Positions 3,396 through 32,182 of a stretch of DNA of 64,000 bases are shown piece after piece (position 1 is the stretch's first letter; each line of letters begins with the position of its first letter). The position numbers were made by a program, and so were the translations under genes. The notes under the pieces are model-generated. The model was not told the DNA's origin, did not search any database, and saw only the letters and a list, made by a program, of their open reading frames with translations. Location: the sequence record MN159079.1; one strand, 5' to 3'.

Positions 3396-4310
3396 ATGTC
3401 CTGTAAACTGCTGAGTATCAATGTTCACCCGACCTTGTCCATGGTTATCACTGAGGACAAAAGTTCTCATTTGCGTTTCCTTGGTCACACCAGTGAAAAG
3501 ATGGCACTGACAACCACACCCATCAAGTTGGCTGGGGAGTTGATCGAGATCACTGATTTGTGGCGGGCGAGTGAATCAACATCCGGGATCGCGACCACAC
3601 GCTTTAAGGTGATCAAGTCCTGCCTGGTCTATTACCCGTTTGGTGGTAACGCAATAACGCTGATGAAAGCCGAGAACCGCGAAGAAGGTATTCGGAAATT
3701 GGAACGGCTCATCCAAATATTCAAGCAATTCACCGACTACATTGCTGACGTTATTGACTTCGAAACAGCGACTAAACAGTTGCGTGAATTAGAAGATAAA
3801 ACGATGGATGGATTGGTCTTCATCTACGGCGGTAAAACTTCGCAAGGTGGTAAACGCTTCTTCGAGAAGACCGAGTTCTTGGTCGGACGGTTGGTTGTAA
3901 GAACCACTTCTTTGGTTACCACCGATTTGGGTGAACGCAAAGAAGTTCCCGTTGGGCTCCAACTGGTTTTCACTGGGACAACAGGTAGCGCTATATTTGC
4001 TGTCCTGGACAACCCTATCAACAATGACAAGTACGAGGCGATCATGAGGATGACCAAACCTCATCCCGATTGCGTTCCTCGTATTTTTCATACTGCTGGA
4101 TCTACTGCACACGTTAGCAGTGGACACGGTCAGAATTTACCTGACGGATTCCCCGTCGGGATTACGTTCACCTATGTATCACCGGTGACCGCTAGACAAC
4201 TCACTCTCTATCGGGATGCCGATGGAATGGTCGAGTTCTTCGAGAAGACCTATCATGATGCAATGCTTCACGGTCATCTCAACCCCATTAACAACGAAAG
4301 TAAGGAGTAA
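3396..4310 (+). CDS. hypothetical protein
   Basis: 304-aa ORF with GAGGA RBS. Confidence 0.85.
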   Translation: MSCKLLSINVHPTLSMVITEDKSSHLRFLGHTSEKMALTTTPIKLAGELIEITDLWRASESTSGIATTRFKVIKSCLVYYPFGGNAITLMKAENREEGIRKLERLIQIFKQFTDYIADVIDFETATKQLRELEDKTMDGLVFIYGGKTSQGGKRFFEKTEFLVGRLVVRTTSLVTTDLGERKEVPVGLQLVFTGTTGSAIFAVLDNPINNDKYEAIMRMTKPHPDCVPRIFHTAGSTAHVSSGHGQNLPDGFPVGITFTYVSPVTARQLTLYRDADGMVEFFEKTYHDAMLHGHLNPINNESKE

Positions 4311-28261: not shown

Positions 28262-28720
28262 TTACGAGAAGTCTCGGATTTCTTCCCATGCTTTACCGTA
28301 CTTATTCAGTACGTAGTTGATGTAGAAAACACCGAAGAGGAAAGTGAGTATGGGGTTCACCTTGACCTCACCTTCGCCACCTGTTTTACCCAGGTTCAGT
28401 ATAGCCCGTCGGGCACTGAATGCAAAGATAATCATGGCGATGCAGTACATCAGGGATACGATCATCCCAAGGACCATCATGATCCTGGAGAACTCATCAG
28501 CTTCGCCGAGACCGGTCATCCAGGTAGAGATCCCATAGAGCGCTGCTGCGGTGTACAGGAACGCGCCTGAGAGCACTCGTTCATTACTCTGCTCACTTAC
28601 GTGAGACTGGAGCTTGTACGCCCACATGAGGTTGTACGCACCCAGAGAGACGACAGAGAGAAAGACCATCAACCAGGTGCTGATCTTCATACGGGTTTGG
28701 ATCATAGAAATCATGAACAT
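28262..28720 (-). CDS. integral membrane protein
   Basis: 152 aa with about 4 hydrophobic helices; AGGA RBS. Confidence 0.8.
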   Translation of the reverse strand: MFMISMIQTRMKISTWLMVFLSVVSLGAYNLMWAYKLQSHVSEQSNERVLSGAFLYTAAALYGISTWMTGLGEADEFSRIMMVLGMIVSLMYCIAMIIFAFSARRAILNLGKTGGEGEVKVNPILTFLFGVFYINYVLNKYGKAWEEIRDFS

Positions 28721-28791
28721 TTCATTTCCTTAAAAGTTAGTAAGTTGCAATATATTAACCTTTGGGTAATTTTTAATAGAACATAATAAAA

Positions 28792-28823
28792 GCCTCTACT
28801 CTCCGGTTAGGGAGAGTAGAGGC
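28792..28823 (-). terminator. intrinsic terminator of the minus-strand RNA operon
   Basis: GCCTCTACTCTCC...GGAGAGTAGAGGC followed on the minus strand by TTTTATT. Confidence 0.8.
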
Positions 28824-29688
28824 GATTACTGACGTGTACTACCTTCCCATTACTCACTCACTTCCCGATTATAGATCCGGCCAAAGACCTTATCGGGATC
28901 AAGAGAGTAATAGGCTGATAGCAAGTACGTGAGGGGTTCCAAACGGAAACCGTCACTTCTACCAACTTCCATGCAGAGCAAGCATGGCGGACCGTTCGAC
29001 TTCGTTATTAAGGTGCTCTCTGAAGTATAGTCCCCTCAGCTACCCGCCGCGGCCTCAGCCGGGGGTTTTTGCTAAGGGCATCAGCCTTATATAACGTCGT
29101 CACTGTACTGGCACTAACGAATAGAACCATCGGCGCACGGTTAGGGTACCTACGTGACTCGCGTCCGTTGGGACGGGAGATGGAACTTCCTTATAAAGGA
29201 AGAAAGGGTTTTGAACCCAGGATGCCCTGATCCATTGTAATAGACCATCGCTTCACTCCTTTCATTAGAACCTAGCATGCCTTTTCGGCCAAAATGGTTC
29301 ATCAGAGTTACTGTATATGGGAACTGTTCCGTGGGTTCAAAAAGGTATCCCGGACAATGACTAAGTAACCACACTCCACCCCATCAGCGCAAGCTAATGT
29401 AAGGTACGTCACTATCCAGGGAATAGGGCCGAGAACACGCTGTCTTTTAGAAGGATCGCTTTTGAGTGGTAAGTTCACTCATCTACTGCCAACCGACTTC
29501 CCCGTAGGGCTTCGTCTTAACTAACGTGTCTCGGTGATTCGTACTAGTATCTATCTGGTATGTTTGACACCTTGGGTATCATGGCAAACAGCCTAGGATT
29601 AACCTATGTACAAATATAGTTGAGAGTGTAAGTAAGAAACACGGTAACAGGAGGCGGAGAAACCGTATGAATACACTTACACCCTCAA
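28824..29688 (-). ncRNA. candidate large structured ncRNA (~850 nt)
   Basis: ORF-poor, with many nested and long-range helices; lies between the tRNA cluster and a terminator (see findings). Confidence 0.55.
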
Positions 29689-29692
29689 AGGG

Positions 29693-29768
29693 TGAGAACT
29701 CCTGGAATCGAACCAGGGCAATCCCGCGATGGGTTGTGCGGGCGACTTTCCTTTCGTCTTCAGTTCTC
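29693..29768 (-). ncRNA. tRNA-like RNA with non-canonical 10-nt anticodon loop
   Basis: Acceptor GAGAACT/AGTTCTC, T-arm CCTGG-TTCGATT-CCAGG, D-arm GAC/GTC, stem CCCGC/GCGGG with loop ACAACCCATC; no encoded CCA. Confidence 0.7.
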
Positions 29769-29770
29769 GT

Positions 29771-30034
29771 TTACAGTTCGATGTCGAAAGACATCACTTC
29801 TTGTTCTTCGGTCAACTTGGTGTTAAGATCGTCAAAGCCACCAACGTGTTCATCATCCAGGAAGATCTGGGGAACTGTTGTGACTTGTCGACCACACAAT
29901 TGACTGAGTTGTGTTGTGTCGATTCCGGAAGACTTGATATCAATATATTCGAACGCGATACCTTTATCTTCGAGAAGCTCTTTTGCCTTTACACAGTAAG
30001 GGCAATTATCCTTTCCATAAACTTTGGCTTTCAT
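29771..30034 (-). CDS. grx: glutaredoxin
   Basis: CPYC active site, TVPQIF, VGGFDDL. Confidence 0.92.
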   Translation of the reverse strand: MKAKVYGKDNCPYCVKAKELLEDKGIAFEYIDIKSSGIDTTQLSQLCGRQVTTVPQIFLDDEHVGGFDDLNTKLTEEQEVMSFDIEL

Positions 30035-30058
30035 GGTGTTTCTCTACGGACTTAAAAA

Positions 30059-30134
30059 TGGCAGGCAAGCAAGGATTCGAACCTTGGACATCTGGTTTTG
30101 GAGACCAGCGCTCTACCAACTGAGCTACTCACCT
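30059..30134 (-). tRNA. tRNA-Trp (CCA)
   Basis: 76-nt cloverleaf; anticodon arm CTGGT-CTCCAAA-ACCAG; encoded 3' CCA. Confidence 0.95.
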
Positions 30135-30587: not shown

Positions 30588-30732
<145 letters not shown>

Positions 30733-30765
30733 GATGTCGTACCAAGGGTACGACGTACTGGACTT

Positions 30766-30966
30766 TCAACCAGCATTAAAAGAACCTAAGATCAAACCAC
30801 GGACATTGCCTATGGTTCGACCAATCAAAGTGACTTCGATGCGATCAATAGGCAAATAACCATTCGCCAGATCAATCGCTTCCGATAAGTCGACAGCCGC
30901 GATAACCACTGCGTCGTACTCGTCATAGTCCCAATCATCGGTTCTTTCAACTTTATAGATGTTCAT
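30766..30966 (-). CDS. small acidic protein (R-x-D-x-x-x-Y-D-E-Y family)
   Basis: 66 aa with GGAG RBS; paralogous to 56117 and 56405. Confidence 0.8.
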   Translation of the reverse strand: MNIYKVERTDDWDYDEYDAVVIAAVDLSEAIDLANGYLPIDRIEVTLIGRTIGNVRGLILGSFNAG

Positions 30967-31036
30967 ATCGACAGTCTCCGTTGTTAGCGATTTGGCTTTT
31001 CAACGTACTACCAGCAATATCGAACATCTTGCATAA

Positions 31037-31181
31037 CAATGAGTTTCCCAGAGTTTGACATTTTCTATCCATCATGGTCCCCGAGACCGGATTTCGGGAC
31101 GCGCCGGTGCTACTTCGATTCTAGACCGAAGTGTAATGGTGTTTTTTACGATTCGGGGGTTTCTGTCAAACCACTTCATTG
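31037..31181 (-). ncRNA. structured RNA, tandem copy A
   Basis: Same terminal motifs and loops as copy B, with different but still complementary stems. Confidence 0.7.
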
Positions 31182-31190
31182 TTTATTTAT

Positions 31191-31329
31191 CAATGAGTTT
31201 CCCAGGGTGTAGAGTATTTTATCCGCTGCGGGCAGGCCAGGTGGGTCTTCGGGACGCACCCACAGTTGGCTCAAGAGAGCTGCCTTGTGTTTTGGCGACT
31301 GGCCTTTATTTCTCTACACTACTTCATTG
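31191..31329 (-). ncRNA. structured RNA, tandem copy B
   Basis: See copy A; 9-nt spacer between the copies. Confidence 0.7.
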
Positions 31330-32077
31330 AAAGGTGTTAGCTGTTTCTCTCTTGGAGCCCAGCATCGTCACCAGGATAAAACCTTTGTGTGACAACACTC
31401 AATTAACACCTATATCATTGTGACACCTTCTCGGTGTGATACATAGTCGATCACCGCATTGGTTAGATCCCTGATGGACGACTGGACGCTGCGTATAGCA
31501 GTGTTTGTCTCCTAGGTGGGTATCGCCAGCACCGTGTCGGCTATAGGATGTGATCACACGAGGAAACCAGAGGGATGTCCAACCCTTTTCAGTTACATGT
31601 GATCACGAAAGCTGTTGTTAACAAAGTATAATAACTTGTTGTTACTAAATACTTTTCAATTGGCTCTCTTTGAAAGCTAATAGAAAAGAGGTCTTCACAA
31701 ACCGTATGGAAGACCTTTGAAAAATGTAAAGGATTAACAATGAAAAATAAACCAACCATACACGAAAGCCAACACCAATGACCTTCTATATAAACTCTCT
31801 TTGAAGAGCATATATAGAAAGGGGGTAGGAAGACTACCCCGCGGGTAAAAGCAATAACCCAAGAACGTGCAGATATTGAAAGCGGGAGCTTTCTTGATAA
31901 TGACTCTTGGGGGAATCAGTATTAAGAAAGCAAGGGATAAAGCTGCGCACAAAATCCCTTTGCTTGTATTACGTAGGAGTTTATTCAATGGCTTCGTTTT
32001 GACCACTGTCGCGTTCAGTAATCAAAAGGAAGCATTTTTGTACATATAATAACAGACACCCATAACTTTTCAGGTAG

Positions 32078-32093
32078 ATATTATCTACATGAG
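32078..32093 (+). promoter_or_regulatory. putative phage early promoter
   Basis: ATATTATCTACATGAG, a weaker motif variant at the head of the plus-strand cluster. Confidence 0.4.
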
Positions 32094-32182
32094 AAACCCG
32101 TTGGTATCTTAATTGTATGGTACAACTGTGTGGGATTTCCTACACTATATGATTACCTCTATCATCATAAGGAAACAGAGTT

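Follow-up and report, generated by a model that had tools for sequence, protein, structure and literature searches.

The gene-free stretch at the end of a tRNA operon in Aeromonas phage D9 probably encodes a large structured non-coding RNA (we put this at roughly 70%), which would be read from the minus strand at 28825-29690 as the last product of the operon and would owe its 3' third to an RNA family of the chimalliviruses. Coordinates are positions in the 64,000-nt stretch of record MN159079.1 that was analysed (the window), and strands are the plus and minus of that stretch. Judged from sequence comparison, the candidate is apparently undescribed and would belong to a new RNA family of chimalliviruses as a divergent member that has no ribozyme; a search of the literature found no description of such an RNA in jumbo phages or chimalliviruses, nor of a hammerhead ribozyme in jumbo phages.

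Genomic context of the locus

Phage D9, the source of the window, has a 261-kb genome and belongs to the genus Ludhianavirus of the Chimalliviridae, the nucleus-forming phages. Over 28700-29800 D9 and D3 are 100% identical, with D6 at 99.9% and LAh10 at 99.0%, all of them jumbo phages of about 260 kb. On the minus strand, tRNA-Asn, tRNA-Asp and tRNA-Trp are followed by a glutaredoxin-like ORF (29771-30034), a tRNA-like element and the gene-free RNA region, and then by the terminator, a DUF4234 gene, two virion structural genes and dTMP kinase.

Between the tRNA-like cloverleaf and the terminator lie about 865 nt (0.87 kb) with no credible or conserved ORF, as the earlier note on this DNA had stated: the longest ORF in 28824-29690 has 74 aa and a GTG start, and no segment is protein-like. 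Stop-to-stop segments showed no resemblance to the coding sequence of the related loci or of the rest of the D9 genome, and a pseudogene test by tblastn in both directions, including 648 segments from related loci, returned noise only and no credible protein similarity. A plus-strand ORF at 29667-29903, behind AGGAGG, was rejected; its frame is not kept in ZPAH34.

The terminator that closes the operon is as strong on the minus strand as had been claimed (Table 1), and its sequence is common to the terminators that end the RNA in the related loci L010, L011 and L014. The promoter-like motif of the 5' starts of L010-type RNAs does not recur in the window, where it had 3 matches and 4.9 would be expected, and a sigma-70 scan stayed at chance level.

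Table 1. Features of the D9 RNA locus and of the related loci (L numbers); coordinates without a locus number refer to the window
Feature	Coordinates	Strand	Remarks
Intrinsic terminator, end of operon	28792-28823	minus	13 pairs, 8 G-C, then U run
Conserved 3' module, ~330 nt	28825-29155	minus	R1 20.2 bits; z -3.57
Terminal long hairpin, begins CAGCC	28837-28923	minus	outer helices conserved in family
Helix GAACGGUCCG - 6-bp hairpin - GAAGUUGG	28962-28997	minus	flanks conserved in family, hairpin covaries
Motif CCCUAACCGUG	29136-29146	minus	counterpart of family GCCUUAACYGUG
Rest of lineage-specific 5' module	29156-29619	minus	several predicted multi-helix domains
First hairpin of RNA	29620-29688	minus	14-15-bp stem with one G-U, inner 5-bp stem
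tRNA-like cloverleaf, directly upstream of RNA	29693-29768	minus	fold z -2.9
RNA without 3' module, pEt-SU	L013:3229-3919		
RNA without 3' module, SXP01	L039:2234-2973		
RNA without 3' module, Survivor	L040:2343-3038		
Hammerhead	L004:5595-5672		
Hammerhead	L006:3695-3777		
Hammerhead	L007 and L008:3003-3079		
Hammerhead	L010:2965-3040		
Hammerhead	L011:3041-3118		
Hammerhead	L012:3505-3583		
Hammerhead	L013, about 3822-3899		
Hammerhead	L014:3010-3092		
Hammerhead	L039:2873-2949		
Hammerhead	L040:2940-3018		
Hammerhead	L041:3174-3251		

Strand-specific folding of the region

The whole region folds far better than chance, and does so on the minus strand only. The full region had a fold z-score of -4.34 on this strand and of -0.96 on the plus strand; the corresponding values were -3.57 and -1.04 over 28825-29155, -4.20 and -1.20 over 29156-29690, and a coding control had -1.6 and -0.9.

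The complementary pairs that the earlier note had listed are all present exactly; they carry no weight as evidence. Perfect complementary k-mers, for which that note had asked for a comparison with shuffled sequence, are not commoner here than in dinucleotide shuffles: 19 were observed against 23.4 for k=7, 7 against 6.2 for k=8, 3 against 1.4 for k=9 and 2 against 0.4 for k=10, a count that 30 of 300 shuffles also reached. Individual long-range pairs therefore prove nothing. The nested pairs within 28849-28911, which are part of the terminal long hairpin, and the leader stem nevertheless fall in helices that are backed by comparison with relatives, and the leader stem (29620-29633/29675-29688) favours the minus strand as had been noted, its one G-U being an A-C mismatch on the plus strand.

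Related RNAs in chimalliviruses

Relatives were collected through the orthologous virion structural gene, which led to Pseudomonas phage OBP and five jumbo contigs of IMG/VR, and through blastn, which added Kosakonia phage Kc263, Klebsiella phage N1M2, Serratia phages Sureiya and Yubaba, Pantoea phage Survivor, Shewanella phage SXP01, Edwardsiella phage pEt-SU and Erwinia phage AH04. At the syntenic place the relatives have an ORF-poor stretch of 0.7-1.1 kb that is either unannotated or called small hypothetical proteins; it follows the tRNAs and glutaredoxin, often directly after tRNA-Met, and precedes a terminator and the same structural genes. This order of tRNAs, glutaredoxin, RNA, terminator, two virion structural genes and dTMP kinase is kept in at least 15 phages or contigs, and D9 conforms to it with everything on the same strand and one extra gene, that for DUF4234, after the terminator.

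Compensatory changes are abundant among the syntenic RNAs of these related chimalliviruses: 23 of the 47 pairs predicted in the 3' domain show them, as do 19 of 32 where the 5' domain begins. The OBP RNA likewise folds in its sense orientation (z -6.7, against -1.7 antisense).

The family appears, from the sequences compared, to be limited to the OBP-like clade. In 24 more distant chimallivirus contigs, one of them an EL-sized genome, a model of its central region and hammerhead (R3) had no match around the orthologous structural gene. Searches of IMG/VR with the pattern AGACGAANGGAAAGTCGCC gave a single chance match inside an ORF (L005). The pattern AGCCTATTA-gap-TAATGGGA was too loose and was set aside: it picked out 88 stretches in IMG/VR, of which all 80 listed were chance, and at least 120 stretches in metagenomes, likewise chance among the 80 matches listed, which included no intermediate between D9 and its relatives.

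Hammerhead ribozyme in the relatives

The alignment of the relatives has an invariant core, CUGANGAG...GACGAAAC...CCGUC, that belongs to a type I hammerhead. CUGANGA, GAAA and a GUC cut site make up its full catalytic core; its three stems covary, and so does a pseudoknot of 5 bp that joins the 5' flank to loop II. With stems I, II and III and the 5-bp pseudoknot specified as the structure, 89.7% of cells pair, against 28-46% with partners slid, and compensatory changes occur in 15 of the 25 pairs; these values were reached by none of 500 shuffles. A descriptor scan found exactly one hammerhead in each of 11 related loci and none in D9.

Type I hammerheads with a stabilising pseudoknot have been described (Perreault et al. 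2011, PMC3088659), and hammerheads that process long phage transcripts are known in general. The relatives' ribozyme is like the former in its full core, three stems and pseudoknot of 5' flank and loop II (PMC3088659), and differs from known hammerheads in being embedded in a 1-kb structured RNA and in its long stem III, which is capped by a conserved UCCA loop. It is unannotated, and the Rfam models miss it (16.6 bits in one search, nothing in others), probably owing to the long stem III. In SXP01 a second GACGAAAC...CCGUC fragment lies further upstream, at about L039:1890-1920.

No hammerhead was found in D9, D3, LAh10, ZPAH34 or AerS_266; for D9 this covers Rfam at E<=10, R3 and the descriptor.

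In pEt-SU, SXP01 and Survivor the terminator comes within about 20 nt after the cut site and the 3' module is lacking (Table 1); in the other nine relatives examined, a 3' domain of 230-325 nt follows the cut site. The ribozyme therefore separates two modules that are able to exist apart. That pEt-SU, SXP01 and Survivor manage without the module would also suit a humbler view of the region as only a structured 3' trailer, a cis element that ends transcription and shields the tRNAs from 3' exonucleases and has no role of its own, as would the position at the 3' end of the operon and the halt at a strong terminator. We regard this as unlikely: a hairpin alone would do that job, whereas what has been kept across genera here is 0.45-1.1 kb long, has many helices that covary and includes single-stranded motifs that are conserved, and in the relatives a ribozyme cuts the RNA into defined pieces.

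Conserved 3' module of the D9 RNA

With blastn and an nhmmer profile of the OBP-type RNAs, only the terminator was matched in D9 and ZPAH34, and covariance models were therefore needed. R1, built from the 3' domains of nine relatives with D9 left out, matched 28825-29155 on the minus strand with an E-value of 5e-4 over about 100 kb of sequence and had this as its sole match in the whole 261-kb D9 genome (E 1.3e-3); the score is modest (20 bits) and E-values of such models are rough. A random best match would land on the right strand of this syntenic 0.9 kb with a chance of about 0.002. Of the 47 model pairs, D9 forms 34 with helix sequences that differ from the family's, 4 are mismatched, and the 9 that are deleted are replaced by a G+C-rich insert of D9.

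The elements of the family 3' domain, namely CCUUAACYGUG, AACRGUCCG-hairpin-GAAGUUG and the long hairpin beginning CAGCC, were all found in D9. In the relatives GCCUUAACYGUG stands directly 3' of the hammerhead cut site; its D9 counterpart CCCUAACCGUG is CCUUAACCGUG in LAh10. The GAACGGUCCG-hairpin-GAAGUUGG element could also be read by eye in ZPAH34 and AerS_266, between which it is 100% conserved. In the terminal hairpin CCUAUUAC/GUAAUGGG includes a U-G pair whose plus-strand equivalent would be a mismatched A-C, and the apex is a 6-nt loop containing GGCC (28876-28881, minus). At the corresponding apex ZPAH34 and AerS_266 have CCAAAGGCCACGG (columns 485-497 of their alignment, A9) with GGCC within it, invariant while the flanks vary, and the GGCC apex may be a self-complementary kissing loop.

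The family 5' domain, with UGUAAGACC, UAAAUCCA, GUGAAC, UGGUGGG and their helices, was not found in D9. A model of this domain (R2) had no match in the D9 region with filters off or in the genome, and R3 had none in the D9 region with filters off, in the window, in the whole genome or at the D3, ZPAH34 and AerS_266 loci. As R1 matches and R2 and R3 do not, the D9 RNA is best described as the family 3' module fused to a lineage-specific 5' module.

tRNA-like element and 5' module

The element directly upstream of the RNA is a cloverleaf with a 7-bp acceptor, a 3-bp D stem, a 5-bp anticodon stem and a canonical T arm followed by A-CCC. It departs from a tRNA in its anticodon loop, which has 10 nt instead of 7, and is called neither by ARAGORN nor by the Rfam tRNA model. 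The copy in ZPAH34 is 79% identical to that of D9, with compensatory changes in the anticodon stem; between ZPAH34 and AerS_266 there is again a compensatory change in the anticodon stem, and a reading of alignment A9 by eye shows both partners changed in a pair at the T stem base. The AerS_266 copy barely passes the Rfam tRNA gathering score of 29 with 29.6 bits. Cloverleaves of this kind with a 10-11-nt anticodon loop thus occur in three Aeromonas phage lineages (29693-29768 on the minus strand of the window, L003:5003-5084 and L250:1519-1596), and the conserved element may serve as a signal for processing or as a decoy, or be simply an unusual tRNA.

Phage tRNA clusters are known to counter host defences that target tRNAs. 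If the element and the RNA together were a decoy against defences that sense or cut tRNAs, such as anticodon nucleases, the abnormal loop conserved in three lineages would make sense; we find this very unlikely, as OBP-type relatives have a normal tRNA-Met or an ORF at the place of the cloverleaf.

The 5' module of D9, first hairpin included, is about 535 nt long and, as far as sequence comparison reaches, is without detectable relatives outside Ludhianavirus: it matched neither R2 nor R3 and contained no protein remnants. Its structure is predicted from folding energy, the copies available for comparison being 99-100% identical. The loop of the first hairpin (29646-29661) has 16 nt, is rich in C and U and contains CUCC and CCUCC; in ZPAH34 and AerS_266 a long hairpin with an apical CCUCC likewise comes after the tRNA-like element. 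No phage target complementary to this loop over at least 10 nt was found in the phage genome except the locus itself.

Over the 1 kb that was compared, D9 and LAh10 differ at 11 positions, every one of them within the RNA. Two adjacent changes turn an A-U into a G-U pair and a G-U into an A-U pair, seven fall in predicted loops and two break pairs of the energy-minimum fold. That all 11 lie within the RNA, that the 5' module is confined to Ludhianavirus and that k-mer complementarity is at chance level would each fit decaying, non-functional DNA, the remains of a dead gene, an intron or a mobile element with a fortuitous structure. The strand-specific z-scores of about -4 for both modules and the homology of the 3' module to a covarying family tell against such decay, as do the lack of protein remnants and of an Rfam intron match, and we consider it very unlikely that the region is a mere scar.

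The shorter version in Chaoshanvirus

ZPAH34 (Chaoshanvirus) has the same layout as D9 in a shorter form, with the tRNA-like element, about 440 nt with a z-score of -4.6, and the terminator. Beside the terminator ZPAH34 and D9 both have CAGCCUAUUA...UAAUGGGAAG, and ZPAH34 has GGAAGUUGUU in common with the OBP-type family. R1 gave no match to the ZPAH34 copy even with filters off, so its link to the family is the weaker one, drawn from synteny, from 10-nt motifs in common and from alignments read by eye.

AerS_266 is 86% identical to ZPAH34 across all 621 nt of the query, a figure that drops to about 80% within the RNA body, and the coding genes beside the RNA are 82-84% identical. Identity within the RNA is patchy, from 98-100% in the 3' core to 62-74% in variable hairpins. 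Among 171 predicted pairs, 13 are compensatory and none is broken, and about a dozen single changes are compatible with wobble pairing.

Comparison with known RNA families

At the gathering score, Rfam 15 recognised three tRNAs only in D9, and at E<=10 it had nothing meaningful in 28600-30100: no GOLLD or ROOL, no group I or II intron, no RNase P and no ribozyme. ARAGORN found no tmRNA in D9. In OBP and eight related loci GOLLD and ROOL were again unmatched at E<=10 with permissive filters. The earlier note had seen in this DNA an ornate non-coding RNA of a nucleus-forming phage, either GOLLD/ROOL-like or new; the minus-strand RNA candidate at the 3' end of the operon stands, as a new class, and membership in GOLLD or ROOL is not supported.

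The likenesses are nonetheless real ones of setting. GOLLD, an ornate RNA of about 800 nt that phages and prophages carry, often lies by tRNA islands, a context similar to that of the D9 RNA; one member lies downstream of tRNA-Met, and OBP-type RNAs often come directly after tRNA-Met. GOLLD also has a conserved 3' and a variable 5' region, as does the D9 RNA, a resemblance of layout only. ROOL, of roughly 600 nt, occurs in phages and prophages near tRNA islands and has no known protein partner, which is similar to D9. On the other side, GOLLD comes from Lactobacillales and environmental sequences and not from chimalliviruses, its model is unmatched by the D9 RNA, and an internal hammerhead is present in the relatives of the D9 RNA. 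A multimeric cage has been shown for GOLLD, whereas the D9 RNA is known from its sequence, in which a GGCC apical loop is all that could be noted in this regard. The helices and motifs of ROOL are unrelated to those of the D9 RNA, and its Rfam model is unmatched. We therefore consider a divergent GOLLD or ROOL RNA hardly credible in spite of the common phage tRNA-island context and similar size, as neither was matched at E<=10 in D9, OBP or the eight related loci, nor in the searches at gathering score.

The GGCC apices of D9, ZPAH34 and AerS_266 recall the palindromic kissing loops of OLE and GOLLD. A cloverleaf that abuts an RNA, as in D9, is found in the MALAT1-mascRNA system, in mitochondrial tRNA punctuation and in bacterial tRNA-linked small RNAs. 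Unlike in systems of the MALAT1-mascRNA type, the D9 cloverleaf lies at the 5' end of a long RNA, in a phage, and its cleavage is presumed.

Proposed processing and role

For the large non-coding RNA that we favour, host tRNA-processing enzymes would cut the primary transcript at the cloverleaf, RNase P on its 5' side and a nuclease of tRNA 3' ends on the other. The RNA would thereby gain a free 5' end, and at its 3' end it would be protected by the hairpin of the terminator. In most relatives the upstream position is taken by a genuine tRNA-Met or by an ORF, and between the 5' domain and the 3' module lies a type I hammerhead, which would release the 3' module and leave a 5'-OH on it. D9 would have lost, or never had, the hammerhead and the family 5' domain, and as the hammerhead is absent from D9 its 5' module probably stays joined to the 3' module.

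The most likely role, by our analysis, would be that of a stable trans-acting RNA released from the transcript of the tRNA operon. More speculatively, the 3' module may be the working core of this RNA, which during infection would have to do with tRNAs or translation, a link also suspected for GOLLD and ROOL. Shine-Dalgarno sequences could be bound by the CCUCC that the first hairpin exposes in its loop, and copies of the RNA could associate with each other through the apical GGCC. It is a tentative thought, and one we would not expect to hold in full, that these RNAs make up a new modular, ribozyme-processed class of ornate RNAs in one nucleus-forming clade, with an autonomous 3' module that acts on the translation or tRNA machinery, possibly self-associates through its palindromic apical loop in the manner of GOLLD and ROOL, and is delivered in lineage-specific ways. 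If so, the module would be delivered by a hammerhead in OBP-like phages and by tRNA-like punctuation in Aeromonas phages.

The candidate would add an independent, unannotated class of RNA with the context and the conserved-3'/variable-5' layout of the still unexplained RNAs of GOLLD/ROOL type. Chimallivirus isolates with the RNA have Pseudomonas fluorescens, Serratia, Klebsiella aerogenes, Erwinia and Aeromonas as laboratory hosts, and their natural variants amount to a dissection of domains (5' domain with ribozyme only, 3' module only, both), with the hammerhead as a simple biochemical handle on the family. In nucleus-forming phages the RNA also raises the question of its site, inside or outside the phage nucleus.

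Annotations and other features of the locus

The records of D3 and Kc263 place small 'hypothetical protein' genes within the RNA, and that of N1M2 places them on the strand opposite to it: D3_0006 lies within the structured RNA (window 28850-28972, minus), and further ones are at L006:3673-3864 and L007:2360-2872. Such annotations inside or antisense to the structured RNA are probably not genes, and the finding would correct them in the D3, Kc263 and N1M2 records.

Further upstream, a tRNA gene at 30600-30745 (minus) of the window and at about 5900-6150 of L001 is interrupted by an insert; with its intron search ARAGORN reported an intron-bearing tRNA in D9, and in D3 a tRNA-Leu(caa) whose intron has 169 nt. 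D9 and D3, otherwise identical, thus have different inserts, and that of LAh10 is different again. A run of 10 N lies within the split tRNA gene of the window, at about 30688-30697.

Divergent genes upstream of the tRNA operon are separated by about 1.2 kb (30966-32180) for which the D3 record gives no annotation. The ORFs there are short and unannotated, with 35-91 aa over the part that was scanned, and a terminator-like hairpin lies on the minus strand at 31822-31840. Elsewhere in the D9 record, the beta subunit of class Ia ribonucleotide reductase is annotated in pieces (258878-260857 and 1-214 of the record; L254 and L251), and a homing endonuclease gene sits amid them.
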